From positions 558,001 through 622,000 of the forward strand of contig JBLDXI010000046.1 of the NCBI GenBank assembly GCA_047495785.1: a stretch of 64,000 nt of DNA, given 5' to 3'. Both the position numbers and the translations under genes were made by a program. The notes below the pieces were generated by a model. That model was given only the letters and a program-made list of their open reading frames with translations. It was not told the origin of the DNA and did no database searches. This DNA is from Lepidodermella squamata. Its lineage: Eukaryota; Animalia; Gastrotricha. Positions 10,787 to 44,976 of this stretch are shown one piece after another (the stretch's first letter is position 1; each line of letters begins with the position of its first letter).

Positions 10787-10801
10787 TTCCGTTCCATTCG
10801 A

Positions 10802-13393
10802 TGGGCAGGTCCCGGGTTACCGGGGACTGCTGTTAGTCGGCAGACCCCCTCCCCGTTTTTCTCCGTTTGTCCTTGACGCCCGCGGCAAATGCCGTTCGTT
10901 TCATTTACATTTTTCAAAATTTGTTAAACGTTTGTTGAATAATATAAAAATTAAATAAAAATTTAAAATGACCTTGAAAATTTTATTTTCAATTTTTTTG
11001 GCGCGTGACTTCGGGTTTCTCGTCACGCGATAACGACCTGTCGAATTAATGCGCGAAAATTTGTCAGGATTCAGTTGATGATTCAGGATTAGTGATTATC
11101 GAAAAAATATCAAGCTTTTGCATTCAGGGATGGAACAGTTACATTATTAAGTTGATACTATTTTGCTTTGCGGAGCAACCCGGCCGCGTACAAATATCTG
11201 CCTAATTTCGGAAGTGCGCCAAAATATCGGTATCGGTTTCGGAGTATAGCGCGCGCACTTGCACGATAATTAACAAACCATTAGACGCACGCGCAGAATG
11301 GCCGTACCTAATGATCATGTGGCAAATAGAAGTGCGTAAGTAAGAAGTGAGTATGATTGATTGATTGAAAATTTTAGTCAGGCTTCGCTGCCAATAACCG
11401 CAACATTGGGTGAACAGAATTATTCCGCAACCACAAGCCTAACACCTCGCTTACAAAAAGAATGTGTCAACTCTTGCCTTCTAACTGAAGAGTATAAAGT
11501 TAGCAGAAAATCGATCAACATTAGTACATTGGTTGAAGCATTGGTTTTTGATGGATTATATTCCTGTTATGAGAATAAAATGTGAACAGTCCTAAAGCTT
11601 CTCCATGATGCAACATTTATCAGCCTTATTTTCTGTCATTTTTTACCATCCACTTTCTTCTGTCTCCACTTGCATTAAAAGTGTCGCCTATTGTCGTCAT
11701 AGTCGTTTAGCGTTTATCGTATCATCGTTTCCATCTTTTATATCCCCTGTTTTCCTGAAAAAAAGAAAAATGGAAGTTTCGTAATGAAGAAAATCGTATT
11801 GAGGCACAGCCGAGTCGACATCACTCAGAATAACGCCAAAATTCATAGATATAAACGACGACCCTATCATGCCTATACTATTTTCGTTCTATATTGTTGT
11901 TGTACAAAAAATGCGCGTCGTTATACAAACGTTTACAAGGGCAGCAATTGATTTGAGGGCACGACCGCGCAGGTTGGCAGAAAGTTCCTAGATTACTAGA
12001 TTATCTAGGATAAATGTCGGCGGGGTAGAGCAACGTTTTTACGTTTTAGATAACTTTTAGCATTGAACACACGTTTATAAGCGTCATACTCCTTCAGTTT
12101 TCCTGCCAAATGAACACTACTATCACATATCAACCCCAACATTACATAAAACTGTACGAAATTTTTCTCGTTCATCTAGGATAAAGCTCTGAGTTTTAAA
12201 AACTTTCTGCCACCCTGGCACCGCGCACGAATAGCTCCGCTATTCCAATAGACATAATTTAAGGAAATTGTCTATGGCTCTTGCCCTCAGACACCAATGT
12301 AAATCCCATGTACAGATTGCTATGCTTCATACCGAATCGTTTGAACGACTTTGCATGAATGAAATTAACAAAATACCACGCAAACTAGCCTTAATCTACG
12401 CGTTATATTATTATAGATATCGATTGTTTGATATTGACAAACAACCCTCCATTCAGCAGATTGAGTGTTGAGTAGCTTCAAGTTGAATGTTTGAAAAATT
12501 GTTTGAGTAAAATGTTGGTCTTGCAGAGAATTCCCCATAAAATAGTGATTGTGCCTTCTGAGCAGGGAAAGATTGCTTGACTTTCTCACAGAATCACCTG
12601 AAAATAGCATGAAAATCATAAAAAATTTGAACACGAGATATCATTTTAAGGCGGACCAAGATTATCGCATCACTGTTAAATTTTTAAAAAGGTAATCTGC
12701 CATCGACGCTTTTCTTCGCTGCCGATGATCCTAACATTGGGTAAACAATAATTACTCCGCAATTATTATTACCTTACACATCGCTATAGAACAAATTGTT
12801 AGCTTATAAAGCATGCCTTTCCAACTGCAGAATTTGAATGCTAGCCGGCAGAAAATCGATCAATGAAATAGTAACATTGTTGGAACATTGCTTTTTGACA
12901 GTTCTGTATATTCACCATTCCGAGACACATGCGAGCGAAAGCGTGCAAGTGAAGTTGTCCAATGCATCTCAATGATGAAACATTTCTCCGCCTCAATTCT
13001 ACCATGCACTTCCGAAACGTTGTCACATTTAGACATTATCTGTTATTCCTATCCTAACGTCGAGCCATTTACCACCAAAGTGTTAAGAGTAATATCCTAT
13101 CTAAGTCGTTCCCAGAGACCTTGAGTCCCAAGCCTTACGACACTGCTTAGGAAGACTGCTTAGGAAGATTACTGATTTCGAAACGTAAAATCGATGCGCT
13201 TGGTCCTGGTTCGGACGAAATAATAGGTTCAAATGAGTTCAGTGTTCAGTGTCAGTTCAGGATCCCAGATACCAGGAAGAAAAATAATTGGGACCTGCCC
13301 ATTACGTCGCACTGCGAAGCAAGTGCGCGTAAGACAATGCAACTTATGCAAAAATAGAAGCATAGTGCCGCCGGCATTGCGTGGGGACTGATT
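10802..13393 (+). mobile_element. Non-autonomous Helentron/Helitron2-type element (HINE-like), element A
   Basis: 5' subTIR TGGGCAGGTCCC (10802-10813) followed by partial IR GGGGACTGC. 3' subTIR GGGACCTGCCCA (13290-13301) followed by a TTACG...CGTAA hairpin (13302-13332). Both termini resemble those of element B. 3' end approximate. Confidence 0.7.
11970..12217. mobile_element. hAT-like MITE nested in element A
   Basis: 17-bp TIR CAGG(T/G)TGGCAGAAAGTT with one mismatch; flanking 8-mers CGACCGCG / GCACCGCG (degenerate 8-bp TSD). Confidence 0.65.
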
Positions 13394-13429
13394 TTTAAGA
13401 AACGACCTTATTTTATTAATTAACAGGGG

Positions 13430-14700
13430 TTCATATTTTCGAATTATAAATAAAACAATATTTCAAACCACGGAAAAATATAAAAAGGCTTCCGTATTGG
13501 TTTTCACATCAATTTATTAATGAGAACTGGCGCGCAATCAGGTTTTTGGCTGGTGTTAGGCAGTAGTTCGTGTTGCCCGTGGGTTGGGCTCGTCAAGTTA
13601 ACTTTCGGCTGTCTGGCAGTGTATTAGTGCTTATTTTAAGTTGCGGCATTGTATATTTGATCAATTTTTGCTATTGTAGGCGGCAGTGGAGTGGTTAAGC
13701 AGCATATTTTTCAGATTATCAGTTAGATCGGCTTGTTGCTGGCTGTTCTTCTGCAGCTCATGACTTTGAAGATGAGCAAGCGACCATGTTTTGGTCTGAA
13801 TTAGGAGCGCTTTGCTGTGAATTGAAACTCCTTATATCCAGAACACCACTCGTTTTCATAAATTTCGGGAATTTCTCGCGGAGTTACTCTGATTCACATT
13901 TTAGATGCTATTGGAGTTCACAGGTTAGAGATGGGGTTTAATGGATGCTCCTTGTTTATGTTGGCTTGGCATGAGTGTACTAGAATTTACTTTCTTAATG
14001 CTTTTCTGTCTAAGAATTCAATCTAATTTTGCCCTAGGGTCTCTTTGCTGTCTTTCTAAAACCGAAGTTACGGCGTCGATGCACTCGGGGACGTTATGTG
14101 TTATGTGCATTTGATGCTGGTTGGAGTCTCGAGTGTGACATCATTTTCATCTTGAACTTCTTGATAACTGGTAATGGCGGTCCGCTAGGGTTGTAATATC
14201 TCTAGGCTTCTCACTCTAGGATCGAATGAGTGATAGAAAAATGTTAGGCAACATGTAAAGTTTGAAATGCTTCAGGCTGTTGCTGTTTGGGCTTTCGTGA
14301 GCTAGCGTGTTTGAATGCAAGGCGAGTGTGGATCAGGGTGGCGCTGCGTAAACACTCTGATTTAAGTTTGCACATTTAAGGTGACTAATAACTAGTAAGA
14401 ATCCGACTTTAGGCCTTTCATTTTAAGTCAACTGAACTTTCATTAGTTTCGGTCGTTAGCCAGATTATTTCCGAGTTGCTTATCTGGCAGCGCTAACGAT
14501 ATCCATCCACACTCACACTAGCTAATCACGAGTTGCGGATGGGTAGCTGAATAACTAACGCTTGAAGCCAACAAAGGAATGAAGAATTGGATGCTATAAC
14601 CAAGACTTGTTAAGAAATTTCACGATGAATTTGTTTCATTTTGACTTCCGTCTTGCTTTGAAATGTATGATGATTATTTACAAAATTCAGTCGTGAGGTT
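13430..14700 (-). mobile_element. Highly decayed non-LTR retrotransposon (RT C-terminal part, CR1/L2-like)
   Basis: Stop-riddled minus-strand translation keeps LINE-RT-like residue patterns and ends in an AATAAA/A-rich tail near 13410. Recognised by eye only. Confidence 0.4.
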
Positions 14701-14777
14701 AAATTGCGTTAATGTCTCATGTATGTGTAGAGTGGTAATTTCCATTTTTTTCTTAGAATTTATCGATCAAACTTAAA

Positions 14778-15600
14778 ATGGCTAGTCAAAAGGAGAATAC
14801 GATGCGCCCGATACGATCTATACCTTAAGCAGTCGGCCCTTCAGGCGCTTGACTCGCGGCAGACTAAATCAAAGCAAGAGAAACCAAACCGAAGATACTG
14901 GATGTGTTATTCAGCCACGACCACAAATGGTACTTTTAATGTTGAATTTCTTGAAAAATTGGAATTATTTTCAAGGGATCGGAGAACTCTTCTAGAAGAT
15001 AGTTACGAAAATAACTCTATCGTGGATCTATATGAGCCAAAGTAAAATGGTTGAATCCAGGAGCGTGGTATGTTAACATTTCAACTGTTGTTCAGCCGCA
15101 ATATTATTATTCTGATTATTTTCTCAGGTAGTCTGAGATTATTGAAACAGTTTTGGTATCGATTTCGGCTCTGTCGAAAATAAATTGGCGCAAGAGAAAT
15201 ATCGTCAATAATCGAGCTAAAATTCAACGTTGTCTTTGTTTGAATGTCGCAGTTCAACTGTTACTTATTGAATTTCTAAATAATTTTTCGAGGTAAAAAT
15301 GCCAATAAAATGTCGAAACCAAAAGTGTAATTTTTCTGTGAAAATCTGTTGAAATCCATCTTAATTATCGATCGAGTGGCTGTTGCTGATGACGAAGGAT
15401 GGCCCACTGCTCTATATCTGACAGGCTTTCATTCATGCAGAGATTGAAGCAGAAGCTACAAATGGCGAAAATATTTCACAACCACCAATAAAAAAGCCGG
15501 CCTTGGGACCGGTTCCGGGAAAAAACCGCGGAAGGCCTTTACAATGCTAGCATTGCCCTCAGGATTATATACACGAATTAGCACGCAAATAAGAAATATT
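14778..15600 (+). pseudogene. Decayed intron-containing gene remnant of unknown origin
   Basis: ATG at 14778 and successive donor/acceptor pairs (G|GTACT..TCAAG, G|GTATGT..CTCAG, AG|GTAAAA) with exon-like composition but internal stops. Confidence 0.3.
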
Positions 15601-18600
15601 GCGAACATTTTAAAGCCCGCTATCGAAGGCGAAACTGTTAGAGCGAGAAGAAAGCCAGCAAATAAATTATATATTTTTTCGCATATATCTTCGCAGCCGA
15701 AATTTTAACCTGAGCAGCACAACTACAGCGTGTCCCATAAGTAATGCACGCAAAGAAAATACACGGAAAAGGGCTCAGAAAATTTAAAATGCGAGGCGAA
15801 GTCACGCCTCGTGGCCAGAAAATTTTTAGAAAAATTCAAAATATCACACGTAATCAATTTTGCGTCACTCTAAGTGAGATTAAAAATTCCGGAGAAATTT
15901 GGCCCAACCCGGTAAAATACCGAAAATTACCGAACCAGTTACCATCGGGATTTTCCGGGATTTCTCCGGTAAATCTTTAATTTCTTCGGTTAAATCGCCG
16001 ATAAAAGATGGAAATTCTCTCGGTAGGTTTAATTTAATAAAAGTAATGAATTTCCTACTAAAAGTTACCAAATTAAAGAATAGTTGCACAAATTCTGCGA
16101 CACTCTGTATTTATCCATCTTAATATCGATTTCGTCGCCATAAAACATCATGAAATTGATATTTTCAAGCTTTCCTTATTGTTAAAATGGCTAATACAGG
16201 TTTTTGTACATTTCAAATCGGCCACCTCAGGGCGGAAAAGTGAGCCGCGTGATGAGACATGCGCTGAGCTAAAAATTAGGTAAAAAACAGCGACTGGTCG
16301 AGGGTCGAGGGTCGAGACCATGATTCACCGTTTCACACCGTTTCCATAATATGGAGGTACAGCAATTGGCCGTGGCCCGTAATTTTGGGTTGGCGGAGTC
16401 TGGCGAAATTAATTTCAAAATTAATCAGAAAATGTTCTTCTTCTTCTGGCTGTAGGTCATAGTCAAAAAAGCCGAAATAGCAACAATAAATCTGAAAAAT
16501 TTGTTACCACGAAGCTGTAATTGAACGCTGATGCCATCACTTGAGCGGCGTAAATATACATATTTAAACATATTTCCAGAGGTATTGTGTCTACTTAATT
16601 TTGGTACCGTTAACACTGAAAATTGAGTTTCGGCAGCTAAAAATATAGAGCTATAAATAGAAAAAGGTTGTATCTATTCAGACCCCCATCGGAATTCACT
16701 AAAATTCAAACGCTTTGAATTTTTTGTTGAATTTAGGGTTATGAAGTTTTCGAAAATTTAGGGAAAAATCGCATGGAACCGTGAAAAATGTAGCGTGCCA
16801 TTGCGGGACTTCCCATAGATATATCAAAAAAGGAAAAAATCTATTGAAACTACCCACCCGTCGGCGGATGAAGGAATGCCTAATAAATGGTAAGAGCTGA
16901 CTTTTCACCTGAGTGGAAAGAAATTGAGGTTTTAAAATACGTGTAGTCCCAGTCTTTAAATTTCGCGTCGAAAATCTCACTCAGAAAAATCAGCACTGTT
17001 TGTGTGACAAGCTTATGGCAGTTACTGTCTTTGAGTTTAATTTAAAAGCGATTAAGAGTCACGTGACTAGTGTGGCTGTATTAATGACGCAACAATGAAG
17101 GCAGGAGCCCTTCTAAACGGGGGGTCGTGATTTTTTTTGGACTTTTGCTTAAATAGAGGTGATTTTCTCGGTCAGTTTGTAAAATTTTCGAATTTTGAAC
17201 ATATCCTAAGATTCCTCTGCCCTTACATTATAATATCACTTAGAAATAGCTTTAGAATACATTTTACCATTAAAATGCTGGCTGAAATACCTGTTATATA
17301 TGCCCATTTTGAAGCTTGTTCTGGTTGCTTGTTGACCATTGTTTAGCGATTTTAAGCGATTTTAACCGGATTTTCGAGCGATATATGGCTGCTAGCAGTC
17401 GTGGCAATTAGATTGTCGAGAAAAAACGGCTGCAGAAGCATTAAAACTGACAGAAATGCACCTTTGACGTAAGTGAAAAAGCCATAAAAACTGCCTTTTT
17501 CACGCACAAATTATTAATTTGTGCGCTGCCCATGTGTTTTTTTTTATAATCGCTGAGTGAGAATTTTGCACAATGCTATTTTGCGAGAAGTAGTGTGCGA
17601 CGCAAATTATGTCAATTTTTCAGATTTTAGATTTTGGAACACGAATTTTGTATCAAATGCCAAACTATACAAAATTCATACACCAGGCAATTAATATCCT
17701 GTAAATCAAAGGTATAGATCTACCCTCCGATAAATATTACTATAGGTATTCCAAACTACCTTCGCTGAATTGATAATTTTAATTTTAGTTTTGAATTTAT
17801 TAATTTATTAATTATTTTTATGAAATTCCCGGCAACTTGTATTTGTGTCCATCCTTTCGGTATCTTTTATCAATAAATTTCAACTTGTGAAGATGTTCAG
17901 TATTGATTGCCAGCGAAACCCGAAATTTTAGATGGCCTAATCAATTATTATTATTATTATTTTTTATGGCACCGAATTTATCAGCTTTGTCTCTAATATT
18001 CGTCTGACCCCAGTGGCTATGGCATCTGGCTATGGCATATCAAGTTCAGATTTAGATACCGTGCTTATACCAGGCTTATACCAGGACTTGAAGCTGAAAA
18101 TTCCTGCGAATATCCGGAATGAATCAGTACAATTTTAACCATTTTAGTTAGACCCCTAAATTATTTTTCTATTTTATTGCGGTTTTTTCGAACAATGTTC
18201 AACGGACGTGGTAAATTGTTTCAGCCTCCGAAAGTTGCATTGCTTCGAGATTTCACGTAAAATTGATTGCCGTTCACGCTTGCAGCTTGAATTGTTACAA
18301 CATGCTATTTTAGCAGAAATATTTTCGAAAGTTTTTCAACATTTGCCATCCATTTTTTCTACGTGCCTTTGCTGACGTTTTGATCTTTCAAACTTCTTCA
18401 TGTCATAATGACTGTCAGAATGACCAGGCCTGACCCATTCGATGAGGCCCGTGACCTAATTACGCCGCCGGCGAAGGTGTAATATTCCGCGCGCTCGTTT
18501 TATTACTGCTGTTTTATTACTAATCAGGTCATCATGATGAGTGTGTGCGTGTTTATCGAAAGAACCGATTTTCCTCTGTCGACCTCTTGCTATCCAATTT

Positions 18601-20265
18601 TAGCATCTGCAGATTTCCATTCGAATATTGAATATTTATATATTTGTGGAGTTTTTATTTGTTTGTTATTTTGAACCAGACCACCAGACTAGAAATTTAT
18701 TATTATTGCCAAGCTTTTTATTATTCACCGTCACCTGTGGCTGCGCTCCAATTGTCGGCGTTATTTGTCTTTCATCGGTCACTGCTTGCCTGGCTCCTAT
18801 TACATGGTACGTTTTACCTTCTGTTTCTACAGGTTTGAGGTGGCGGGATGAATCAAATCAAATCAATACCCATTTTGTTGAGTGACAAAATTTCCGAGCT
18901 ATTATTTTTTCCCGAAAATTTTGAGGCATCATTTTCGTGCCATGGGAATTTATTGATAATATCGAAGTCTAATCGATTCGTTAATTCTTCTGCTGCAATT
19001 ACCGGTGCAACTGATGGGGCCCGTTTACTCACGGGTAATTTCGCGATAGCTAAATAAGGTGAACAGATTTACTATGCATTATTGAAAAAGGTTTCACCGG
19101 TTCTTCGATTTTTTACCAATTTTCCATCTATTTTCTATATTTATGTTCGTAATCCTATCAATTTGAGGAGTATTCAGCCTATTGAATAGCCATTATGGAA
19201 CTGATATCAGGAAATTAGCCAGAGCATTGTGTCACTTATGCGCCGATGATCATACCTGCATTTTATTATTTTATTTTAATTTTCCTGTATTTTTTTCTCG
19301 CAATTTTTAGTCGTCGGACCGCTCGCGTATTTTAGCGCCATGAAAATAAAAAGAATTTAGATCATTGTGTCTCGGAGATGGCGCAAGATCAGATTGTTCT
19401 CGATTTAGTGTCATAACCCTTGTTATTCAACAGAGGAAAGCGTTCCATATTATAAGCGATTTTATTCCTTCATTTCTTCATTCTGCATTATTTTCTATCA
19501 ATTTCTCGAAATCATTAGGCAGTTTTTAATTTTAATGCATCAACGTCGCTTTGCTCACCTCTTCGCTGCGACTGGTACCTAATGCGGGTAACTTTTACCC
19601 ATTCAGATAACCCACCTTAATTAATTCTTTTTAGCTGCCGTTAATGCTTCTGCTCTAACCAGTCGCTCATCAACTTCGCCTCGCCGCGACTTCGGATTTT
19701 CGGATTGCATTCTTGGATAATTCCAGCAAAATCATGTTCAATCTAATTTTGGAATATTTTTGATATCAGTTCACACATCTGGCTTCACTGTGTTCAAAAT
19801 GAAATATTTGTGTGGCATAGTCAATAAAATTGCCCCATCATTGGGCTTTCAAAGGCTTATGACTTTTATTATGGATCAAAAAATATGGATGATACTTCAA
19901 TTCTCGGAGTGGGTAAATTTAGTTTGCATGATTAGCCGGATAGCAATCGAACTCGGAGGGACAGTAAGCCACTAATTTTGAACGCAAGCATTCAATATAA
20001 CACGATCTAGCATTTCAAGGTTCACCCATCAAAATTCTTGGAATTCTGGAGCGAAGAAACTCGGAGTGCAAAAATCTCAGAGCAGATGATGATAGTTGTT
20101 GAGCTACGGTTTAAAGAATTCGAAAGAAATTTCGCCTCTTCTTGCAGTTTCGCCTTGCGAATCATTGCAGCTGTTTTTTGACCCAAATAGTAGGAAAATT
20201 TCATTTCATCTAAGAAAGATTTCTGGGTTAGTGTTAGTGGCCTGCCCTTTTAATCCTGAAAGTAA

Positions 20266-20735
20266 TTTTCAGCAGTGACACTTTATCAGTAAAACATTAA
20301 AAAAATTAACTATTAGCATTAATTTGAATAATCCTTGAAGACAATTGAGCAGTGACATTTCAGCAGCGACATTATATCTGTGACTATTGAGCAGTGACTA
20401 TTCATCATTGACAGATTAGCAGGTGACACTTCATCAATTGTTATTTATTAATCTCGGGCATTGAACTAGCACTTTTTGATCTCAAAACGTAGCGCGTAGC
20501 TCTCCTGCAGAATACGGCTAAAATCTCTTGATGGAATGTCTCCGCTAAAATTTCACTGCGCAAATGTCAGCAAAATGAAAATAATAAATTTGTAAAAATT
20601 AATAAAAAAGTGAAAAATCACTGTTGACTTGTCACTGATGATTTGTCACTGCGCAATTGTCGCAGCTGAAATGTCACTGATATCATATATCACTGATGAT
20701 TTTACCCTCACCCGCTGAAATGTCACTGCTGAAAA
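20266..20735. mobile_element. Foldback-type MITE with arrays of CAGTGAC subterminal motifs
   Basis: Perfect 15-bp TIR TTTTCAGCAGTGACA / TGTCACTGCTGAAAA. Several CAGTGAC copies in the left arm and GTCACTG copies in the right arm. Confidence 0.7.
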
Positions 20736-21800
20736 GTCGTAAAACCATTCGGTTCGGTATTTTTAGTTCTCCGTTGTCGAGGCCGTTTACGAGTCAGTAT
20801 TTAGTTCCATTATCCTGGGATATATTTTACTATCCGATTACATTTTTTCATATTTCTAACTTGTCTATTTTTTTATTTTTTTTCATTAGATTCTTGGATC
20901 TGACGGTCCTTCATGTTTCATTCCTTCATCCGGTTGTTTTCGAAGAGCTGTGGTTTCCATGCTTCCGTCGCCTTGATGGAGTGATCGTCACTCCGAAAAT
21001 CTGCCTCCCGCATGAAATATTATGCGTTCAAATTACTGCTGAAAAATTTCAAATTGAACGGCTGGTAACACGGAGGTGCTGGCTACAACACCGTGTGACT
21101 GATTGGAAAGCTCAGTTAAACTCAACTTGTTACAATCGCGTACTGTGACTTTGCGATCTAATGGCAACGGTGTTGTGCCATTTTTCACTCATCTCAACCC
21201 CGGTCGGTACTTCGGCCAACTGCATGATTTCCTTCGAGTCGTTGGGCATGCCGGAATTATGCAAGAAATCAACAAGAATTTCTACGTCTCATTCGGCAAG
21301 GACATGCAGTTGAAGAAAAAATTCTGGCCCTGGTCGCGCTGGGTAACAGACTGCCGGGTTGTGGCATGCTGCCGTCGTTGCTCTTCGGGGCGTATTCGGT
21401 GTAGAATCCTGAAATCGACGCTGCTGCGGTGTATAGCTGATACGAAGGCTTCGAACTGATTGGTCAGCCGACGACTGTTTGCGCGGCTGATAGCAGCTGG
21501 TCAAATCCGCCCAGTTGCCATTTGAAAAGTAAGTCGGCCTAATTTTTCAGAACATTTTCGAAATTTGTTTAACAACATAGCGGAAAATTGATGCTGTGAG
21601 AAACAAAAAAGTGGATAAATTTCATTTTTGAACGGGAATTTCTTGAATTTTTTCAGGAATTAACCGAAATTAGCAGCACTATTGGTAGGTCGTTGTAGGT
21701 CGTTCTAGTTTTCGAATTCTAATTTAGAATCCTGGCAGAAAATACTGAAAATTAAGGATCGTGTTTTTCGGGATTTTCCCATTGAATATTATTTTGAAAC

Positions 21801-22030
21801 TCATTGAATCGAAAAGTATAAAGCCCATGAAAATTCAACAACTCCATTAAGATCGCCGCCAATCAAAACAATATCATTCTCGGCCCGTGAATTTTCGATT
21901 TTTTCAAGTACACTCTCAACTATAGAAATATAAATATCTAATTCGTCTACATCAGCTGACGCTGGCGCATATAAATTTACGAACGAATTTTTTCTTCCAG
22001 CCACCTTAATTTCAAGTGTTATTACTCGTT
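21801..22030 (-). mobile_element. APE-endonuclease fragment of an L1/Tx1-like LINE (decayed remainder probably at about 18900-20000)
   Basis: SFVNLYAP...DIVLIGGDLN matches the NxYAP / IxxGDxN motifs of LINE endonucleases. Confidence 0.65.
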
Positions 22031-22121
22031 CATCGAAATATATTCTAACTATTAATCAAAATTAGAATTTAAATGTAAAATGTATTACTATCGAAATTTT
22101 CGTAGCTTGAAATTTTTCAAG

Positions 22122-22335
22122 GATAATGTGGGTTTCCACTACGACCGCGTCACGTTTCTCGTTAATCCATTCGCCGAGGAAAAGGACGGCTTGTACAACA
22201 AGAACGACCTGTACGATACCATTGTGGCGCCCATGTACCACACGGATCTCATCTCCGGCAATTCGTACACGTTCGACCAATCGAATTTCTTGCCAAAAAA
22301 CCGCATTCCTTCAGTCCGTGACCACGTCCAAAATA
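22122..22335 (+). other. Orphan coding exon (captured or remnant gene fragment)
   Basis: TTTTTCAAG acceptor and GTACGT donor flank a stop-free frame with strong C/G third-position bias (DNVGFHYDRVTFLVNPFAEEKDGLY...). Confidence 0.5.
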
Positions 22336-28600: not shown

Positions 28601-29734
28601 TAACCCACCTCACGTTAGCCACTTGACGCCTCAGCACCAGCAAACGCGAGGCGACGCGAGACTACTTCAGCCGATAAACAATTCCAGTCGCCATAGAAAC
28701 GCGAAATTAAATTATTTTCTTTATGAAATTAATAATAACTTTCATTAATTAATTGATTTACAACAAATAAATTAGAAACAATTGATTTTGCCGCAGAATC
28801 CCGTTCCGCTTGGTTGAAAACGGCCACGCAAAGTTGGCGTCACTATGAGTGAATTGTCTTACGCCGCTGCGCTGCGCTTGCAGCGTGGCGTAATGGGCAG
28901 GTCCCCTTGTCTTGCGTTGTCTTGCGGAAAAAGGAGGTTTATGTTGATGTTTTATATAGAAAAGGTCTAGTAAGAGATGATTGACGTAGAAAAGATGCGT
29001 CAACGAGGCAAAGGCTGACTCTTGCGTAACCGGGAATCAGTTAGAAAATTTATTTTCGCATGCGGCTAATCTGGTTATTAAATAGACCAAATGATAGCAT
29101 ATTAATAAATAATAAAAACTATTTATACTAAATTTAATTTATACTAGTAGATAATCAAAAGTTTTCGCGCCGTATCTTTTTAAAAACATATATGTTCGTT
29201 TGTACCGATTTGTTTTTAGTGTATTCGCGTTGCGTTTTGCGTCCGTAGTTTTGTTCGACGTAAGACACCTTTGGTTCTGTCCTTGAGACGGTAGAGTACT
29301 AGAATATTAGTCTCAGGGTTTTGTCACTGAATGATATAGATATAGAAATGTGTGGAAACATCACCTCGAATGGTTTAAATGGATAATAATTAAAAAGGCC
29401 TTACTCCGTAAGGAGCCGTTAGGGCCTAACCTTTTAGATCTTGACCAGTTTTATCATCATTATCATCCTTTTTATCATTGTTCTTCTTACTGTGTGATGT
29501 CAAAAAGACAAATGTTGCGATTAAATGTGTTTATTAGGTTTTATGAAACGAGCAGCAGTAGTATGCAATCATATGTCAGAGGATCGGATGAAATGAAAAT
29601 CAAATGATGAGAAGTAAACTCAGATGATGATCAGAGAAGGAAAACAGTCAACAGGTGAGTGGATTCAGTCAAATCAGTGAAATGTCGTAAACTGTGTTGC
29701 ATTTCAGATTAGATGTGGCCCGCCGTGATGCAGA

Positions 29735-30439
29735 TCAGACAATCGGTGCGCGTTTAGCGTTGCCGTGGGGGCGATACTGGTCAGCTGGTTCATTGACCAC
29801 GACGATGGCATTACGTTCGCTAACGTTGATCTGGCGGTCCTGAGCGAAGTGGCCCATCACCCCTTTGAATTGAACGACGGTGCCCTCGATCGGCATGCTT
29901 CGTTCGCCGAAGGCCACAACCAGGATGACGCGGTTTCGGCCGGCGATATCGAAACGGTAACGGTTATCGCTCGGCGTCTTGGGGAAGACGTGAGTGATGA
30001 GCCCTTTGACGGCAACCTTCTCGTGGAGGTTGACGTGAGCCACGTCGTCAACAAGAGCGTATTCGTCAACGTGGGCAGCCGTGCATTCCGGGCTGTGTTC
30101 AATGTCGGTGACGTCAGCCCACAACTCGTATTTGTGGCCTGTCTCGCTGTAGCGAGATGCTGCCTGTACGAAGAGATGCAAGGAAAGATGAAACAGATTG
30201 TTTAACATAAAACAGTTAGTTACCGAAATGGTCGGTTCCTGAACTCGAATCGAGCAGCCGTTGAAGAGCGGGGGCAGTCCTGTGCCTTTGATAACGACAC
30301 GGATAGTTCCGGTTTGGTCGTTAAGTACGACAGCCATTTGCGAACCGTCGGCGATCTTCTGCGGGGCTCCCTGCACCACGCCTTGCAGGTAGAAGTTGTA
30401 GTCGCCTTGCCATAGTTCTGCAATTGATTGTCTCTCCAT
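29735..30439 (-). CDS. RPA/SSB-like tandem OB-fold protein of the Helitron; in-frame 60-nt intron 30223-30164
   Basis: OB-fold patterns VLNDQTGTIRVVI and KVAVKGLITHV...ILVVAFG. The AT-rich segment GTAACT...GTACAG is a canonical intron inside GC-richer coding sequence. Confidence 0.7.
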   Translation of the reverse strand: MERQSIAELWQGDYNFYLQGVVQGAPQKIADGSQMAVVLNDQTGTIRVVIKGTGLPPLFNGCSIRVQEPTISVTNCFMLNNLFHLSLHLFVQAASRYSETGHKYELWADVTDIEHSPECTAAHVDEYALVDDVAHVNLHEKVAVKGLITHVFPKTPSDNRYRFDIAGRNRVILVVAFGERSMPIEGTVVQFKGVMGHFAQDRQINVSERNAIVVVNEPADQYRPHGNAKRAPIV

Positions 30440-33400
30440 GGTGAGTTACGAGTTGAAAAACAAACGAAGACTTTAGTTTTGAAAAATCTATTTATCAGTT
30501 AGTCGCAGAGTGCACGAATGGTCCGTGTCTGACTGTTCTCACCCACGGCGGGTAATTAATTATCGATTGGCGGCGAGAAGAAACGGCTGACCCAGCGACC
30601 TGATCGCCTGGTCGCTGACGCTAGTAATATTAGTGGCCGGTAAGTCACAAAATTAAGGAGGCTCTCGATTGATTTATCTGCTAATTATATTTTTATTGAC
30701 TAGTAGTGACAACTGCTCTTCTGACCTCTCGCTAATGACGGGGTTGCTGGTTGCCTATAATGGCACTTTTCGTCGCTAATTACTGGCTTCGTTTTCGTCG
30801 AGTCTGGTTACGACGTCATTCCAGGTGTGTGTGCACGCGTCAATGGGGCGAAGCGAAATCGGCGTTGCGCAACGGCTTACAATAGGTGTGGTTTTTCGCC
30901 CAAGACTACGGCTCTTATCTGCAAGCTGATGATGTGATTGAAAAGAGAGGAGAGGAAATGAAAAAACACTATGTGTGTAATGTATAATACAACATATATA
31001 CTTCGCGACGCTGGTCAAGGAAATTTGTGGCTTGTCTGACTTTATCATCGTTGTAGTGATAAAATGTTGTTGTTCCAGTTTTTCGGGCGAATGTTGTATA
31101 ATGCCCACTAGTCACGTTTATTCCGTGGTGACATATAATTGCTGAGAGATCATAGTTTTTATTTGCTATCGTTATATGATCCGGATAAGTGACAGGCGAT
31201 AGATTTTTCTGGTCATTGATTAACGCCGGTTGTGATTTGCTTGAGCTCTCTTTGTCATGATCAATAACGTGTTGATATTGATCAAAACGGCTGAGATGTA
31301 AAACTACGTTGCTAGATGGTTCCTGAAACAAAATTTCCCGATTATGCATCTTGTTTTCTTTGCAATTGCTGCATTCCTTAACAATTGTAGTGTGACAATA
31401 TTCGTTTATTATTTCTTCTACTGTACACTGGCTGTTGTTTTCGGGTAGGAGCAAATTAACGAGTGACGTACGTTCGAGGCGCTCGGTTTGCGTGTTACAT
31501 ATAGTGCATGAATCGCGGTAACACAAGCTAATGCCAAAGTTATGAAGTAGATCCGGAGTTTCAAGTTCGACTACTTTTAAAAACACTTCTCGGCTATCTT
31601 GTTGTTCGAAATTTTGAAATATATTGGGATGCAGTACGCCCATTGCTGTTTTGAACCGCCCCGCATCCACATTGTCTAGTCGATTGTTTATTTGTTGTAG
31701 TATCGTGAAAAGACTGCTGAAAATATCTCTGACATGGGCGTCATGCTGTGTCTCATTCAACCACGTTAGATGTGCTTGGAGCCATTCTTTGAAACCAATG
31801 CAAACGTCAAATGCTTGCAAACTCGCATTAATATAACATGTGTTTCCGATATTGCGAATTCCTGAGTTGGACGTGTTTGCTGGCTGCATGTGTTTTTCTG
31901 CTGATGTGTGCACATAATTGTTTATACTCTGCGTAAAAGGTGTAGCGTTGCTGATGTTTTGTTTTGTTTGAGGTGCGCGTTTGATATTTTCTCTGTCGTT
32001 TTCACGTGTGTTCGCTGCTGTGATGTTGCTAACGTAATGTCGTATTTCCTCCTCATAGTTCCACGCATCACTATCACAATCATCGTCATCTTCATCGCTG
32101 TCGCTGGTAGTGTTGAACGTTTTCTTATTATTTATCATCTCAACGAAAGAAGTGAATTTGCGTCCGAAATTAGACACCCAATTCGAATTATTGTCCTGCT
32201 GTCTGTCAAAATACGACTGCAAAAGCAATTCTAATTGATTACTCAGCCCTATGAGACGCTCGTCCTCTTTAAGAGTGCTCGATTTTGGCGTGAAAAATGC
32301 GTAATCGTCGTCTGTTAATTTTTGTAGCAAAATAACACCTTTTCGTGTTCTTGCTCTTGACAGCGCTAAATATAAGCTATGCGCATCTACTTTCTTCATG
32401 CTGGACGGACGTGGGTCTGCTATTATAATATACTCAAGCGTGCTGCCTTGGATTGAGTGACACGTTGCACCATATGCAGGTTGTATGGGAAAGTTGTTTA
32501 TAGTATACTTTTTACCGTGTCGATTTAACTTCACTGACCGTGATTCTCTTTTTATCGGCATGACACTCGCGGGCCAAAATCGCGGTAAACCTGGAAATCT
32601 CAACGAATTATTGTTTCCTTCGATGTCTACGAATATATTTATTGGTGGTTTGCTAGGACGCCAAAATACGCCGTCCTGAGTGAACTCAGTGTCTTTTTCC
32701 CATTGAATATATTTTACTGTTCCGCTCGCGCCATTACATACACCTTTACTCACAGCTTGGTTTACTTTAATTTTTACTGGCATACCCTCAAACACATGTA
32801 AAATTGCTGGTATATTCCCTGTTTTATTTTCTGGAAGTTGGAAAATTGATAGCATGTCGGCGACTGAAGCTCCTCGTATAATCGCTGGTATTTTAAATAC
32901 GCGCTGATCTTGGTTTTCTGTTGCTATTTTCTGTAAAGCAGCCATATTAACCATGTGTCGTGTGTTATTATCAGGAGAGACAATAGGCGCATTTCCTACT
33001 AGTTCGTTGAGTTGCGACAAGTCTTGAATGACGCACCCGTCGAGGATGTCTTTTATTACTTGCGTCCATTTTCCTCGTCTACCATTTTTTAGCTCTTCTC
33101 CCCAGACTGGATCGTTTATATACCTGTGTTGTTCTGTTAGATATATAACGTTTTTTATTGACATATATTTTTCATACGCCATTTGTGTAAATTGATCGGC
33201 TTCTTTTGGTGGCTGAAAGAGGAATCGTGATTGAACTGGTTCGAGCTGAAACCAATCACCTAGTATCATTATCTGTATATCTGGCCATTTTTTTGTCTTT
33301 TTTGTTTCCTTTAATGCGTAAAGGGCTTCGATTGCTATTCCGAATGTTTTTTGGTTTTGCATGCTTACCTCGTCGAGTATTAGTCCGTGGATTCCGCGCC

Positions 33401-35121
33401 ATTTGTTAATTAACTCTTCGCTCGGCTGTTTCAGATGATTAGGAATGTCGTTTATCGGTGGTTTCAAAGAAAATGATGAATGTAATGTTTCGCCGCGTAT
33501 AATACTTGCACTGTTGCCTGTAGTTCCCTCATAGCTGACGCAATTAGCTAGGCCCCACATTTTGAAGAAGTGTTGAATTGCCGCATCCTCCTGAACCGAT
33601 AACTAGTAAAGGATCGCATTTCGTGAAAATCTCGGGTAAACACTCAATTTGAATATCAAAAGCTTTTATGAGAACACGGCCGGCGAATAAAATGAAAACA
33701 TAGTGCTGTTTCAAGTTGAGTTTGAAGTATGCGGAAACCTCAGCGAGTGTGGGGTATATTTTATTTCCTATCTCTTCTGTGTAATGTACACTTTCATGTC
33801 GGTTATATGTTATTGCTTCCGTTATGCGTTTCAGGATTATAGCCTGGGTTTGGGGCAACTCAATATTTTTGTATATTTGCCGTGTTTCTGTGCTTTCGCT
33901 CTCTGAAATCGTAGTCATAGCGTTTATTTTCGCCTTATCATTAACCTCCTTCAACTGTTCTCGAGTCACTGGCTTTTTTATTTGTATCTCGTCCGAACCA
34001 TATTCTGCTTCATGTCTTTGTCTGAGATTTGTTTTCAATGTAAAATTTACTAAACTGGAAATTGATTCGTCAATGATATCTGTGTGCATTGTCTCAGCCC
34101 TCTGTAAACAGTCCGACGATTTTTTATAGAAATTTATCAAATTTTCATCGTCAATTGAGATAATTTTATCGCCACTGCTGTAATTCTTGTTTATGATATA
34201 TTCGCTTTCAATGGCCATATCTTTTTCTCGGGCATCTTCTTCTTTTCTGAAATTTGCACTGTCTTCCTGGGCAAAGTAGAATTGTTGGTGATAATTAAGC
34301 TTGTTCTGAATTTCTCTCGATTTTTTCCAATTATTAAACGCCATTTTGGAACTGCCATTTTCGTCTAGAAATTCTGTTTTTGGATCTCGAAAAGCTTTAT
34401 ACAATAGTAGAGCACATCTGTAATATTTCTCGGCGTCACCTTCATGTTCATCTAATTTATCTCGGTTCGGAAATCTTGGGCCGACAATGCGTGGCACTAC
34501 AGTCTGCGCTCTTATGAGAATACGATGTGATTCGTATTGTGGATGATTGGGGTGAAATCTGTAGTGGCTCTTCATTTTTTTCGTAACTTTTTTGTAGGCC
34601 AGGACATACCAATACCAGGGCATGTTTTCTAGCTCTTTTGGTCGATATAAATAATCATATATGGCCGCGTTTCTTTCAAACATACCGTGTTTATTCTGTG
34701 TGATTATGCATGATAAATCTTTATCCTCAAGCATGTTTAAGCCTTGAGTTAAAAGCAAAGAGGCGAATTCATCGGAGAAATAACCACCTTTTCCTGTAAG
34801 TAAAAAGTGGGTAACAAGCGGCGATCCTATTTCCATAACGGAACTCTCATTCATTGACATGGCTATTAAGCGTTTAAGTCCTACTCGATGCACATCAATG
34901 TCGAGATTGTTTTCGTTTTTTATTCGTGTAGATAAGCCAAGAGTAGCTACGTAAGCTGCATCTTTAATATAGAACACCTTCGCAGAATATTTAGCAGCAT
35001 ATATAGCCCTTGATATTGCTGCGTTAGCTACGAGGCAAATATCGATGTTAAAGTCATAGATCAAACGTATCTCTGGGCAATAGTTATTTACCCATGCATT
35101 TCCTAAGGTTCGCCTGGTATA

Positions 35122-37489
35122 CAGGGTGTTTCAGAACTCGCGCACTATATGAATAGCATGCGGCAAATGCGCGCGCATTGTTATGCGCATACACTATTAT
35201 ACGCGTATACTATTTTACCTATAAATGTACCACACACTACTGTAGTCAGCGTATAAAATATGCGTAATACATAAATGTACAGCATACATAATAGCACTGC
35301 CGTAGTTATTTTCTGGTGGAAACCTTCGAGCCTCGATAAATTTGAGCCGAGTTTCATTGAATATCTTTTTTATTTCGAGGATGATGTCATGTTTTTCTGA
35401 AACATGCTGATTGATTGGACTCTGAAGCGAGAGGTTTCAAAACAATTTCTCAAATTCCGTGGCTGGATATTTCAGAAATTGATGATTTCTGAGAAAATTC
35501 TGATTTTACTTGATGTTGAATTTGTCGAAAAATCGCTGGTTAATTAGTCTCCTGCCTTGGCATCAAAATTTCTTTCACGTTGCATTAATTCAAGGCCCCG
35601 ACCGCACATGTTGATAAAAAATGACGATGATCTAAACCACTGGCGAATGTTATACATCAAGCGAAGACAGAAAATGAAGGTTTGCAGTTCATTACGTGGA
35701 CTTAATGTAGCAATCTGATTTCGTGGATAACTAATCGAAATTTCCTTGAAATTACAATCAAGAAATCAGGAGCAAAATGTTGAAGGATAAATATCGAACA
35801 ATTCATGGCTAGATTTTATACAATCTTCGAAAAAGCCAAGAAAAGGTGAGAAATTGGAATTTTCCAGCCTTCAGGCTCCAGCATCTCCAAAAATCCGTGG
35901 ATGCCAATTGTATATTTTCACATCACTAAACAGCCAGAGATGTGCTTAACAAGGCCAGTAAGTCGCGCAAAATTTCTATCCACGGGGTTCGCAAGGAGAC
36001 GCATGTCAAATGTGACAAAAATCGTCGTTGAGAGGCTGTTTTCGGCCGCGAACGGGTCATCTTTGGGACCCTCCCTCTTGAATACCCGTGGATGGATTTT
36101 TGATTTCTTGACATCGTTAGATAGCCTAAGATGAGCTCTACAAGGCTGGTTGGTCGCGCCGAAAGTCTATCCACGGACATCGCAAGGAGACGCATGTCAA
36201 ACGACGCGAAAACCGTCGTAGAGAGCCTTTTTCCGCTACAACCGGGTCAACTTTACAACCCTCCCTCTTGAATACCCGTGGATGGATTTTTGATTTCTTG
36301 ACATCGTTAGATAGCCTAAGATGAGCTCTACAAGGCTGGTTGGTCGCGCCGAAAGTCTATCCACGGACATCGCAAGGAGACGCATGTCAAACGACGCGAA
36401 AACCGTCGTAGAGAGCCTTTTTCCGCTACAACCGGGTCAACTTTACAACCCTCCCTCTTGAATACCCGTGGATGGATTTTTGATTTCTTGACATCGTTAG
36501 ATAGCCTAAGATGAGCTCTACAAGGCTGGTTGGTCGCGCCGAAAGTCTATCCACGGACATCGCAAGGAGACGCATGTCAAACGACGCGAAAACCGTCGTA
36601 GAGAGCCTTTTTCCGCCCTTAAACGGGTCATCTTTGGGACCCTCACTCTAAGAATTCCGTGGATGGATTTTCGATTTCTTGATATCGTTAGAAAGCCCAA
36701 GAGCTGGTCTACCAGGCTGGTTTGTCGCGCAAAAAGTCTATCCACAGGGTTCGTAAGGAATCGCATGTCAAATGTCACAAAAATCGTCGTAGTTGGGCCG
36801 TTTAAGGTAACGTCAATGTTGCTGCGTCCATTCTTATGCAAGTGGTAAACGACATTTTCCCGTGGAATCGACTAAGTTTTTGCTTTCAAATTTTAGCTCA
36901 CAGAAATTTTTAAACTCAATCAGAGTGTTGCAACATTACCTTTACTCACGACTTTTTTCACTTCCTCTCAATTTTTACTGCTCTTTTCAAGAGTGAATGA
37001 ACGTGAAATCAAATTCATGGAATAAAACAACAGCAACGGCGTAAAAATTACATTATCTGGAATAATTTTCATCATATCTGTTTTGCAAACTCGAAATTAT
37101 TCATAGCCGCATTAAGAACCTGTCCTGTTGGAGGTTTCTTCATTGAGAAATCGGCAAATTTCCAGATATTTTGCAAGAGCAAGTCTTATTTCCTAGCGAT
37201 ATTCCCATTACTGCAGCAGTGTTACGGTATATACGCGGTATATACGAGTTCGATTTGCGCATGTTATAATGCGCGCATACCGCTTGCACGCCATATGGGA
37301 CGTATAACGCCAACTACATAGCATATACGCATTACACGCATTACCGTTTGCGCTAGCCGCGCCTTATACTATGCAAAAATATAAACATATGTGCGCGGAA
37401 TGTATGCGCAGCGCGCGCACGTTTACTCTGGATACCAAGGCAACCATTTGCCGCAGGTTATTTTAGTGCGCAAGTTCTGAAACACCCTG
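35122..37489. mobile_element. Non-autonomous Tc1/mariner-type TIR element with TA target duplication
   Basis: TIR CAGGGTGTTTCAGAACT(C/T)GCGCACTA, with gapped similarity to about 46 bp. TA at 35120-21 and 37490-91. Removal restores the Rep reading frame. No transposase ORF seen. Confidence 0.9.
35881..36830. repeat. Five-copy 190-bp tandem repeat
   Basis: CTCCCTCTTGAATACCCGTGG recurs at 36071, 36261 and 36451 (period 190); diverged copies start near 35881 and 36641. Confidence 0.95.
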
Positions 37490-40400
37490 TATAGGTGCAA
37501 GGTGTTCTTGTCAACTCCAGTTTCTGTTACTAATTTTTGAGGGAATTTGAATCTACAAAGCGATCTCTTTTTACTTGCTTTTCTAGTAATTTTACCGCAC
37601 GTGAAAGTATGTGTATAGCCGTGGATCTGGTCTTTTCGCAAACTCTTGGTCAATTGAACATGCCGAACACGCTTGTTTATTGAGAAACCTCCAGGTAATA
37701 GTCGAATTTTATTTATATTTTCATCGCTGATTTCCATTATTTCCTCAGGCGTGAAATCCTGAGTTTTCATTTCTATTGCGGTATCAATAACTTCATCATT
37801 GGTATGGGATTTTTTGCAGTTTTTACACTGTGCTACTATCGGCGGCGGTGTTGTTTTCTGTAGAATATGTGAGTACATTCGGTCGACTTTTACCGGCTCC
37901 AAATAACCACCGCAGTTGTTAGCATTACACAAAATTGCGTTTTCTGCTGGTAAGTCCCAAAATACTGGTAATTCAGTTTTGATTAATTCGTTAAGAAATT
38001 TCAGATACGTGTTGCTGAAATCGACGTCATTCATTAGTTTGATGAATTCATCGCGGTCGCGAGGAAATCCTACAATCCAAGCTACGCCATGGCAATGGAT
38101 TCTCAGTCTAGCCTGCGATTCGGGCGCAAAATACAAACTTTCCACGTGGCCCAATAACCCAGGTTTTTTCTTTGGTTGTTTCTTTTTTAGATCAAATGCA
38201 AATAATATTTCCATTATACAGGTTATACAAAGCCAATAATATCGAGCTTGAAGTACAGGATTGTTACTGACTATGCGAATCATTTCCGAAGGTGAAGGCA
38301 TCATCCAGCTAGCTAAAGCACTGCTTTCGTCGGGCAATATTTCTCTCTGGCAGTTTGCTCCGTTCCAAAATGAAACTAACAACGAAGAATCTGGTTTCGG
38401 CGTGAACGTAAAGAAAAGGGACGGTATGCCGCGGTAAATGATTATCGAGTCAAGGTTTCGCTGAAAATCAGTACGCTCTTCGTTGCTGCCGAGTCGCGCA
38501 GAAACACTGGCTGATATGGTATTTAATATGTCTCTTTCTTCGTTGTCTGTGAGAATTTGTTCATTGAAATATCTTCGCTTTTTATTAAGAGAATCAGTTT
38601 GAACTGCGGTATATATATCAGCGCCTGTTAGCTTCGCTACATTTGGTATAACATGCGGCTTTATTTTAGTTTTAACTTTGAGCTGCCTTATAATGCTCTC
38701 TTTGCTTATGTAGTCGTACAGTACTAACTTGAAAGTGGGATGCGTAGCAAAAGTTTCGGTAGATAACATGAGGTAATGTTTAGCTAATTCAAAGAGAGTG
38801 TAATGATGAGCACGCCCTTCTTTCAAACCTCCGCACCCGTATTGAAATAAACATGGAAACACTTTCTCGAAAAACAAATCGTCAGTAGCTTTTAATATTG
38901 TTGTTGATCTGTGTGCAACAAACGTATTTCCCTCAGGTGTTCCGTTGAGAAGTAAATTAACGGCTTTCTGCGTCAATTTATCATTCTTATGTTTCGCGTC
39001 TATAATTACAACTTCCGTCTCCGAGAATGCATTCGACTGAGATATGTTATCATCTTCTGTCGTGTCTGCCACAGATTTTCGTATTTTTCTGGCGTTATTT
39101 ATAAGTTCTCGGGTTGTATCATCCTCAGGAAGCCGAAAAATAACATCATTGATGTCTCCCAAGGGACCATTATTTTTTGGAAAGTGTTCAAATAAAGGAT
39201 TAATACGAATGCATTCTTCGTGTAATTGTCTCACAATTTTAGGGTCAAATTGCAGTTTCGTAGCCATGAGTAATTCCTGATCGCTCGTTATGGGGCCAGC
39301 CATTATAACTTTAGCGACGCCATCTTTTAGAGATTGCGGAAGACTAGATGCAATAGTAGCTTCGTAATTATCCCAACAAATCAAATTGCTGCTGAGTGTA
39401 TTACCAACTCCGCCGAAAACTACACGTATATTGCCGGATACACGAGCCAGTGAAATGCACTGAGTTGCTATATAACCTGCATCTGAAAACATTCTGTTGT
39501 TTCCCAGCACAAAATGGTCGGCAATCGCAAATTTAGGAACCTCAAATGATTGCTTCGTACCCTTTGACAATTTTTTCTCTACTTCGTTCAGGTAAATCAA
39601 TATATCAGTGGTAATCCAACAAAAGTAGGCTTTCTCAGCTTCGTCAAAGTAAAACGACCTCGGTGATAGCAAAAGGCGATTTAATCTGGAATTAAATTTA
39701 TTACAGTCGTATGACTCAAACATGGGCTCGGTAGTCCACGGTTTATTTCCACAAAAATACGCAAGCGCTTGGAATGGAAGATTATCACACCTGACTGACG
39801 TACATTCAAACATTGGAGTATAGAGATCAGTAACAAGGCATATTTTATGATCATATCGCTTCTGCAAAAATTCCAGTGCATCAGAAACAAGTTTTTCGCG
39901 GTAGTCGTCACTAGCAACAAAGATTTCATGGGATTCATTCAAAATGGTTATTTCGTCATGAGTCAGTAAAGAATCTGTTTTGGCATCAAAGGAGTCATTT
40001 AAGGAGTCAATGATATTAGTTGATTTAGTTTTCTTGATCTTGTTATATCGGTCTCTGTGCTGGCGAGCATCACTTTCAAGCCGTCGCTGATGTTCTACAT
40101 CAGTTTCGGTTGATCGACGCGTTGCTGCGTCGAATCTTGCCTTATCCAGGCGCTGACGTTTTCGGGCGACATCTTCAGCAGCACGCTGAGCCGACATACT
40201 CTCGCGTTTCTTCAACAAGTGACCGGCTCGACTAGCGTTGTCTTCAGTCGCCTTCCTCTTGGCATAGGACGACTTTTTTCGTTCGAGGCGCGCGCTTCGG
40301 TTTGTAAAGTCGACAGTCTGGTTCACAACAATGGAATCATCGGTAACCAGGCGCGGCCCGTTCGCTGCATCGTCATCGGCTGATGTTTCAGCATTCATGC

Positions 40401-40986
40401 CCTCGTTTCAGTTGTCGTGAGGAATACGATGATAATTTTATCAAAATAAAATATATGAATTTTTCTAAAACGATACGATACGGTTAGTCCAAATATGCAG
40501 TAAAAATGCATAGCGTAAGACAATACTATGATATACGACACTATGATAAAAGATATAATTTTAATGGAAACTAGCAGAAACTTCTTACTTCAATACTTCA
40601 ATACTTTGTCTATCCAAGTTAGGTAAAAACATCACACGATTCTTACTTCCTTACAGCGGTTTGCATACAGCGGTGAGCAAGCTGCAACATTTGTTGGGCC
40701 AAAGGATAACATTCGCTTCACACGTCCGCTTGTCGCTGGGGCGCAGCAGCCATACTGCACAGTACTAAAATACCCGGGACCTTGAAAACTCTTGGCGTGT
40801 TTCTTGGATTAGAAAATAAAAAGACTTATTTGAAATCTATAAATCTGCAGAAACTTAAAGTAAACAGAGAATTGTTGCCGCAGTCGCCCACCACAAACAG
40901 AGAAAAACGGGGGGTCGGCTTCCGCCTAACAGCAGTCCCCCTCCGGGGACCTGCCCAAATCCATGAAACTCATGTTCTCTCCTTAC

Positions 40987-44911: not shown

Positions 44912-44976
44912 CGATAATACAAACTCTTGCTCTCGGCTAGCCACCTATTGCCTCTCGATCCCGATTCACGCCCGCA

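Follow-up and report, generated by a model that had tools for sequence, protein, structure and literature searches.

A 30-kb block in a Cys-loop channel gene of Lepidodermella squamata is best read as a nest of four separate transposon insertions

Rolling-circle transposons of the HLE2 group are defined by short terminal inverted repeats, a stem-loop that follows the right-hand repeat and a T on either flank (PMC11417382; PMC4067079). Their inverted repeats, of 12-16 nt, mark the 5' end and recur close to the 3' end, and a UCH domain is almost exclusive to the group, where it is found in subgroups c and d (PMC11417382). HLE2 and HINE elements favour T-rich targets (PMC4067079). The sole known route by which rolling-circle elements carry flanking DNA is read-through and gene capture, and read-through past a Helitron 3' end has been demonstrated for Helraiser (PMC4778049). 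Here we analyse a 64,000-nt stretch of the genome of the gastrotrich Lepidodermella squamata (contig JBLDXI010000046.1 of assembly GCA_047495785.1, forward-strand positions 558,001 to 622,000; hereafter the window), in which a gene for a Cys-loop channel is interrupted by a block of 30 kb at 10802-40957. A first-pass annotation had suggested that this block might be a single composite rolling-circle element with cargo, and had kept as its fallback a series of independent hits in one short intron. Based on searches of the whole 121-Mb assembly, we conclude with good confidence that the block is a nest left by four separate transpositions, three of them at one spot of the channel gene. Like ordinary nests of transposable elements in introns, it is made of unrelated elements with their own boundary signatures, the younger lying inside or beside the older. 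It differs from ordinary nests in that three insertion points fall within about 25 nt and straddle an intron-exon boundary, in a gene whose introns are about 50 nt long.

The outer frame of the block is set by a 12-mer, TGGGCAGGTCCC, which occurs at four sites in alternating orientation, 10802 (+), 13290 (-), 28894 (+) and 40946 (-), where 0.06 would be expected by chance; allowing one mismatch yields no further site. These four sites, all of which had been listed in the first-pass annotation, turn out to be terminal and subterminal inverted repeats belonging to two related elements, A on the plus strand and B on the minus strand, that lie tail to tail as it had proposed. The sizes then given, 2.6 kb for A and 12 kb for B, can now be stated exactly as 2,537 bp and 12,105 bp, with the figure for B including a nested element of 2.37 kb. 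A and B have in common their first 87 nt at the 5' end (79% identity), the same terminal inverted repeat (TIR) and the end of the 3' tail, CGTAAGACAAT. Both elements resemble the HLE2/HINE/DINE-1 group (PMC4067079; PMC11417382) in several respects: inverted repeats of 12-13 nt, one at the 5' terminus and its partner close to the 3' end; the stem-loop after the right-hand repeat; a short inverted repeat nested in the 5' terminus; and, apparently, T flanks with no target duplication. Each tail folds into a TTACG...CGTAA hairpin (-13.1 kcal/mol, z -4.0, for A; -13.9 kcal/mol, z -2.7, for B), and the stem of B is unlike that of A in sequence while both pair.

Judged by its termini and domain content, B is an HLE2 of the Helitron2 type. 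As in the HLE2 group it encodes a Rep(HUH)-PIF1 helicase protein, and its short partner A shares the ends only. Pfam searches recovered Helitron_like_N (1e-15), PIF1 (1e-8), UvrD_C_2 (3.8e-6) and a C-terminal UCH domain (2.7e-28), the last placed behind the helicase as in subgroups c and d. An apurinic/apyrimidinic (AP) endonuclease (Exo_endo_phos) is absent from all 31 open reading frames (ORFs) of at least 60 aa in B, which separates it from a strict Helentron; with UCH in the C-terminal place, the earlier naming of A and B as Helentrons gives way to HLE2, and B becomes one more HLE2 in which a UCH/USP domain replaces the endonuclease. Among the HLE2 copies examined, all 13 5' ends read N/T-GGGCAGG and all 14 3' ends read GACAA-T/N (the slash here and below marks the boundary), with no target-site duplication (TSD). 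Two members on contig C1 (C1:2904369; locus L049, C1:2904200-2904560) lie head to tail with a single T in common, the junction being ...AAGAAAA-T-GGGCAGG..., where the upstream tail reads ...CGTAAGAAAA and the next 5' end begins GGGCAGG.... Together with a frame argument given below, this tandem junction suggests that one terminal T per unit is element DNA. If so, A and B depart from the HLE2 group in that apparently one T per unit belongs to the element, and the window copy of B departs from it further in that its transposase gene is interrupted.

The interruption can be read directly from a second copy of B, C15:1380121-1392502, which is 99.5-100% identical to the window copy over the shared parts and has unrelated flanks. 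Missing from it is the private insertion 35122-37489, at whose place it has the empty site CACCTA-TA-TACCAGG. The inserted element has TIRs that begin CAGGGTGTTTCAGAACT and match at 25 of 26 positions, and it has duplicated TA. By frame arithmetic, the Rep ORF of the C15 copy continues in frame into the next ORF, whereas in the window it is interrupted, and the window copy of B is probably no longer autonomous. Neither a Pfam domain nor a transposase was found in the nested element; on its ends, that is, the TIRs and the TA TSD, it would be assigned as Tc1/mariner-like. It contains a 190-bp tandem repeat of 4.3 copies with 90% matches (35962-36792). B is thus old enough to have gained a private insertion of its own, which we count in favour of a nest. 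The C15 copy has a private insertion as well, of 2.66 kb (C15:1380649-1383308), absent from the window copy, where the corresponding empty site lies at about 40430-40436.

A is a non-autonomous, HINE-type relative of B. Its family numbers at least 13 genome copies with the ends N/TGGGCAGG and GACAAT/N, and the 12 copies that were fetched have unrelated flanks without duplication. Copies on C15 and C58 are 98.7% identical to that in the window. A single open frame of at least 90 aa lies wholly inside A, and the element has no similarity to the genes of B. The closest relative of B, the plus-strand copy at C15:1380121-1392502, shares its contig with a minus-strand copy (C15:1471899-1474426) that is one of the two nearest to A. 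The pair is tail to tail and oriented as A and B are in the window, but 79 kb separate the two copies and their flanks are unrelated; an additional A copy lies on that contig at 1499367-1502514. This co-location could be due to local hopping or to coincidence.

The DNA between the two tails had been described as about 15 kb of decayed long interspersed nuclear elements (LINEs), miniature inverted-repeat transposable elements (MITEs) and exon fragments. We find instead a single element, M, which is 15,487 bp long and belongs to a family that has TIRs and a TSD of 2 bp. It was found via genome searches with the sequence beside each HLE2 tail, in which homology begins at 13361 and stops at 28847. 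The termini of M have the form CATAGTG-N-CGCC...TTGCGTGG; CATAGTGCCGCCGGCATTGCGTGG on the left and CATAGTGACGCCAACTTTGCGTGG on the right are distinct and form imperfect inverted repeats that match at 19 of 24 positions. About 10 copies exist in the genome, always as inverted end pairs 15.5-25.4 kb apart, and a 2-bp TSD of variable sequence flanks seven of eight pairs, including that in the window (AG). The copy C36:1172666-1192042 (19.4 kb) runs parallel to the window copy from the first base of the latter to its last, 86% of the window copy being collinear with it in the same orientation. Two copies of 25.4 kb (C4:147356-172777 and C3:2888088-2913511) are 98.7% identical throughout, and the family has therefore been mobile recently; other copies are at C36:1295107-1314730, C28:490618-506602, C30:1161478-1179524 and C4:2263329-2280542.

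Cut-and-paste TIR transposons with a 2-bp TSD include the Mirage-type CMC elements and the ISL2EU-type elements. M is like these in its imperfect 24-nt TIRs, in the variable sequence of its 2-bp TSD and in being accompanied by a MITE-sized family of about 200 bp with a variant of its TIR. It is unlike them in its length of 15.5-25.4 kb and in that no transposase was recognised in the copies examined. None of the 52 ORFs of at least 65 aa in the window copy has a Pfam match, so the LINEs and exon fragments claimed for this interval are undetectable. The ORFs of the 25-kb and 18-kb copies, searched against Pfam and NCBIfam, returned only a SOCS box and a LINE-type reverse transcriptase and no transposase. 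Among the long copies, ORFs of 645, 397, 313 and 229 aa occur; the SOCS box is in the 229-aa ORF and the others have no family match. A Rad21/Rec8-like identity for the 645-aa ORF surfaced as a lead in an Atlas look-up with low recognition, and we do not trust it. The interior of M holds small repeats with many genome copies, and a 200-bp repeat at 21834-22034 has copies that are 96-98% identical. The MITE of about 200 bp whose terminus, CATAGTGACGCCGAAATTGCGTCG, is a variant of the M TIR was seen at L054:301-501 (C13:1664690-1664890) and at about 20 more sites, and was probably moved by the same transposase as M. Loci with the related TIR variant, looked at in an attempt to classify M, turned out to be such MITEs of about 200 bp beside host genes. 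The M family, with its 15-25-kb members, its TIRs, its 2-bp TSDs and its lack of a recognisable transposase, is worth a separate study.

A, B and M each recur elsewhere in the genome with the same ends and unrelated flanks, and they are never together elsewhere. HLE2 sequence borders none of the other M ends examined, M flanks none of the other A or B copies examined, and the flanks of the A, B and M copies examined hold no second A-M-B arrangement. An Rfam search of the interval from 10 to 42 kb gave no match.

The sequences on either side of the block belong to one gene. On the downstream side the minus-strand ORF 9041-10816 has a Neur_chan_LBD domain (3.6e-10), and on the upstream side the ORFs 40973-41266, 41266-41895 and 42035-42316 have no Pfam match. 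Four paralogous loci, L001-L004 (C30:234000-243999, C4:1207000-1215000, C64:132000-140000 and C4:896000-904000), carry all the gene pieces in the same order and orientation, with 145-314 nt where the window has 30 kb. Since all four hold both halves collinearly, the two flanks are one gene, and the earlier claim that the block splits a single gene, which halves from different genes would have contradicted, stands. Proteins were compared exon by exon. The gene belongs to a small family of Cys-loop receptor-like genes, which has an N-terminal extension of about 400-500 residues without a Pfam match ahead of the ligand-binding domain, and the closest database proteins are 31% identical, in the channel part only.

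Further evidence for a nest comes from the DNA left over between the three elements. Two short pieces lie outside all of them, 22 nt between the tail of A and the left end of M, and 5 nt between the right end of M and the tail of B. After removal of M and one copy of AG they join into 25 nt that are in none of the three families, and even with two mismatches allowed the 22-mer matches the genome nowhere else. Because M has a perfect 2-bp TSD, it was pasted into a stretch of 25 nt that already existed and was continuous. On the gene strand this spacer has 13 pyrimidines in 16 positions, then AAG, then TTGC, and beyond A the sequence goes on as TCGAAT.... We infer that the spacer is the native end of the intron and the start of the exon, that is, an acceptor AAG/TTGCA. 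In all four paralogs the exon begins CAG/TTGGA in phase 1, and the split codon is xTT for Leu or Ile, where the window has GTT for Val. In BLASTP, residue 12 of the window ORF counted from 10801 falls on residue 12 of the paralog exon 2 counted from its first full codon, with no gaps, and this register places the paralog exon start within one codon of the A insertion point. The rebuilt intron measures 29 + 1 + 21 = 51 nt with 34% GC, and the next intron of the gene is 53 nt with 32% GC. For the reading frame to close, exactly one T of the two beside A must be host DNA, which agrees with the one-T junction at C1:2904369. The 46 nt at 10756-10801 are 48% GC, open in frame and at the position of exon sequence in the paralogs.

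The probable insertion points are thus the intron for B and M and a site about 5 nt past the start of exon 2 for A. The outer ends had been thought to touch the two halves of the gene directly, but the 5' end of B is 29 nt inside the intron and the 5' end of A is at the position where exon 2 of the paralogs starts. The fallback reading of independent hits that nucleated a nest is essentially borne out, with corrections: the ancestral intron was about 51 nt long, A is probably 5 nt into exon 2, and the elements are of HLE2/Helitron2 type with a UCH domain. With its acceptor displaced, the gene would now be expressible only by splicing across 30.2 kb to TTGTAG/ at 10756, which may serve as an in-frame cryptic acceptor 51 nt downstream, skipping 17 codons.

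The history we propose would start from an intron of about 51 nt between the exon ending at 40987 and the exon beginning TTGCA-TCGAAT. B, with its Rep-helicase-UCH gene, would have entered this intron at 29-30 nt, and A would have entered the opposite strand about 5 nt into exon 2. M, a 15.5-kb element of another family that presumably moves by cut and paste, would have landed in the 25 nt that separate the tails of A and B, duplicating AG. The TA-duplicating TIR element would have landed later in the transposase gene of B. This order is an inference, and A, B and M may have come in another sequence. If correct, the history places the insertions to the base in a gene whose introns are about 50 nt long; one insertion probably displaces an acceptor, and an in-frame cryptic one lies 51 nt further on.

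Several points weigh against this history. Three large insertions within 25 nt are a striking coincidence for which we offer no mechanism, and the block was picked post hoc because it looked odd. Roughly estimated, 121 Mb holding 10^4 to a few 10^4 insertions would be expected to contain close pairs of this kind by chance, and a triple would be borderline. The likeness of the spacer to the paralogs comes down to a few bases (AG/TTG-A, phase and register), the paralogs being 38% identical in the domain. The 5' flank of B, ATGGAT, is about as similar to the paralog TTGGAT as the spacer is, but it comes without an acceptor. The assembly search turned up no empty allele or haplotig, each exon half matching only the window itself, and a set of 5.8 billion proteins held no allele or orthologue from other species or assemblies, the best match being 31% identical. 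We also considered an exact excision of the whole block based on the likeness of ATGGAT and TTGGAT, and rejected it because the only in-frame AG before ATGGAT leaves an intron of 18 nt.

One might ask whether the coincidence could be softened if the first insertion made the spot attractive to later ones, through its structure or sequence, such as the near-palindrome that two inverted HLE2 tails make or the T-rich end of the intron. We regard this as possible and rather unlikely. HLE2 and HINE elements do favour T-rich targets (PMC4067079), and B lies in a run of T just upstream of the pyrimidine tract; HLE2 members also stack, as in the head-to-tail junction at C1:2904369 and in clusters on C15, C56 and C38, and the two tails in the window are inverted arms about 50 nt long around the spacer that M hit. 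But no other tail-to-tail HLE2 pair occurs among the matches listed, the other M ends examined never border HLE2, and the ends of M lie at unequal distances from the two tails, 20 versus 3 nt.

The composite element that was the headline of the first-pass annotation would have started at one HLE2 5' end, bypassed its own 3' terminator and stopped at the other element's inverted 5' end, bringing 30.2 kb into a 75-nt intron once, with the 25-nt spacer as cargo, together with M or without it, and the donor locus since lost. We consider it very improbable. It draws on the read-through known from Helitrons (PMC4778049), which made it a reasonable idea, and for Helraiser, a canonical Helitron, the left end is essential, the right is not, and read-through makes new 3' ends (PMC4778049); the inverted 5' end bears the 12-nt repeat and could mimic a right-hand repeat. 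The known read-through products retain a single 5' end and acquire a new 3' end, both on one strand, in contrast to two outward 5' ends, which are not described in PMC4778049 and are not supported here.

Removing 10802-40957 does keep the frame and leave an intron of normal size, as had been claimed, 29 + 46 = 75 nt from G/GTAAGG to TTGTAG/, both in phase 1, with the downstream exon then starting at 10755 and with T on both sides; the other acceptor that had been named, AAG at about 10786, is out of frame with the phase-1 donor and drops out. But the 46 nt that would have to be intronic are those with 48% GC, an open frame and the position of paralog exon sequence. The T/T junction, which had been taken as telling, is uninformative, because an A stands just before the 5' end in nine of the 11 A-family copies read, the window copy among them, and the right-hand T, being its complement, follows automatically. 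Termination would have to fall right at the repeat, while every normal copy ends 37-40 nt beyond it, after the hairpin.

The 25 unique, host-like nt that lie between the two 3' ends are what the first-pass annotation itself had named as speaking against a composite: they read as the gene's own acceptor and exon start, they are unique in the genome, and M between them has its own TSD. No other A/M/B neighbourhood exists around the copies examined, and the tail-to-tail A/B pairs with cargo that the annotation proposed to look for are absent among these A, B and M copies. Nor does a composite remove the coincidence, since it still needs three close insertions at an unseen donor, plus a non-canonical event and the loss of that donor. 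If it were true, the empty site would read ...CATGGATT/TCGAATGG..., without the 25 spacer bases, and rolling-circle transposons would have a new way to move tens of kb. An assembly artefact, in which the contig was misjoined through repeats so that the gene halves are not truly 30 kb apart or the elements not adjacent, is hardly credible even in a region that is almost wholly repetitive, since all junctions set a canonical element end against unique DNA with no switch within a repeat, AG matches on both sides of M and TA on both sides of the nested element, the HLE2 ends agree with other copies base for base, and each exon half is single in the assembly. The main value of the nest reading is thus negative: a candidate composite is removed, and what takes its place is an ordinary though neatly resolved nest.

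Table 1. Features of the block and of the channel gene around it, in window coordinates.
Feature	Position	Strand	Basis
Downstream exon: N-terminal extension, then Neur_chan_LBD and transmembrane part	9041-10801	-	Pfam, BLASTP
Element A, non-autonomous HLE2 (HINE-type), 2,537 bp	10802-13338	+	at least 13 copies with the same ends
A inverted repeats, 12 nt	10802-10813 paired with 13290-13301		ends read directly
A stem-loop tail, 37 nt, ending CGTAAGACAAT at 13338	13302-13338	+	fold
Host spacer, 22 nt: pyrimidine tract, AAG/, TTGC	13339-13360	-	unique in genome; outside A (end fixed by 12 other copies) and M
Element M, member of a large TIR DNA-transposon family, 15,487 bp	13361-28847	+	paired ends, TSD AG, collinear sister copy
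Host spacer, 5 nt, containing one AG copy of the M TSD	28848-28852	-	outside B and M
B stem-loop tail	28853-28892	-	fold; boundary from C15 copy and tandem junction
Element B, autonomous-type HLE2 rolling-circle transposon, 12,105 bp	28853-40957	-	domains, second copy
B inverted repeats, 13 nt	40945-40957 (5' end) paired with 28893-28905		
Remaining B coding: 528-aa ORF without known function, then PIF1-type helicase fused to UCH/USP domain	30972-35130	-	
Nested non-autonomous TIR element, 2,368 bp	35122-37489	.	TIRs, TA TSD, empty site in C15 copy
Rep (HUH) part of B transposase ORF, truncated by nested element	37426-40407	-	Helitron_like_N E=1e-15
Ancestral intron start, 29 nt, from GTAAGG donor to B 5' end	40958-40986	-	read directly
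Upstream exon, ending at 40987, donor G/GTAAGG, phase 1	40987-41266	-	open frame; collinear with L001-L004; end aligns with paralog exon end

Outside the block, the window holds three further long reading frames on the plus strand. At 44941-49389, 4 kb from the nest, an uninterrupted ORF of 1,483 aa encodes a Ty3/gypsy-type gag-pol with gag, protease, reverse transcriptase, RNase H, integrase and chromodomain, and looks like an intact long terminal repeat (LTR) retrotransposon. Long single-ORF genes at 6587-8821 and 53759-56149 each encode an ANF_receptor ligand-binding region, the first also a 7tm_3 domain; both appear to be like class-C G-protein-coupled receptors and are intronless over 700-800 codons.

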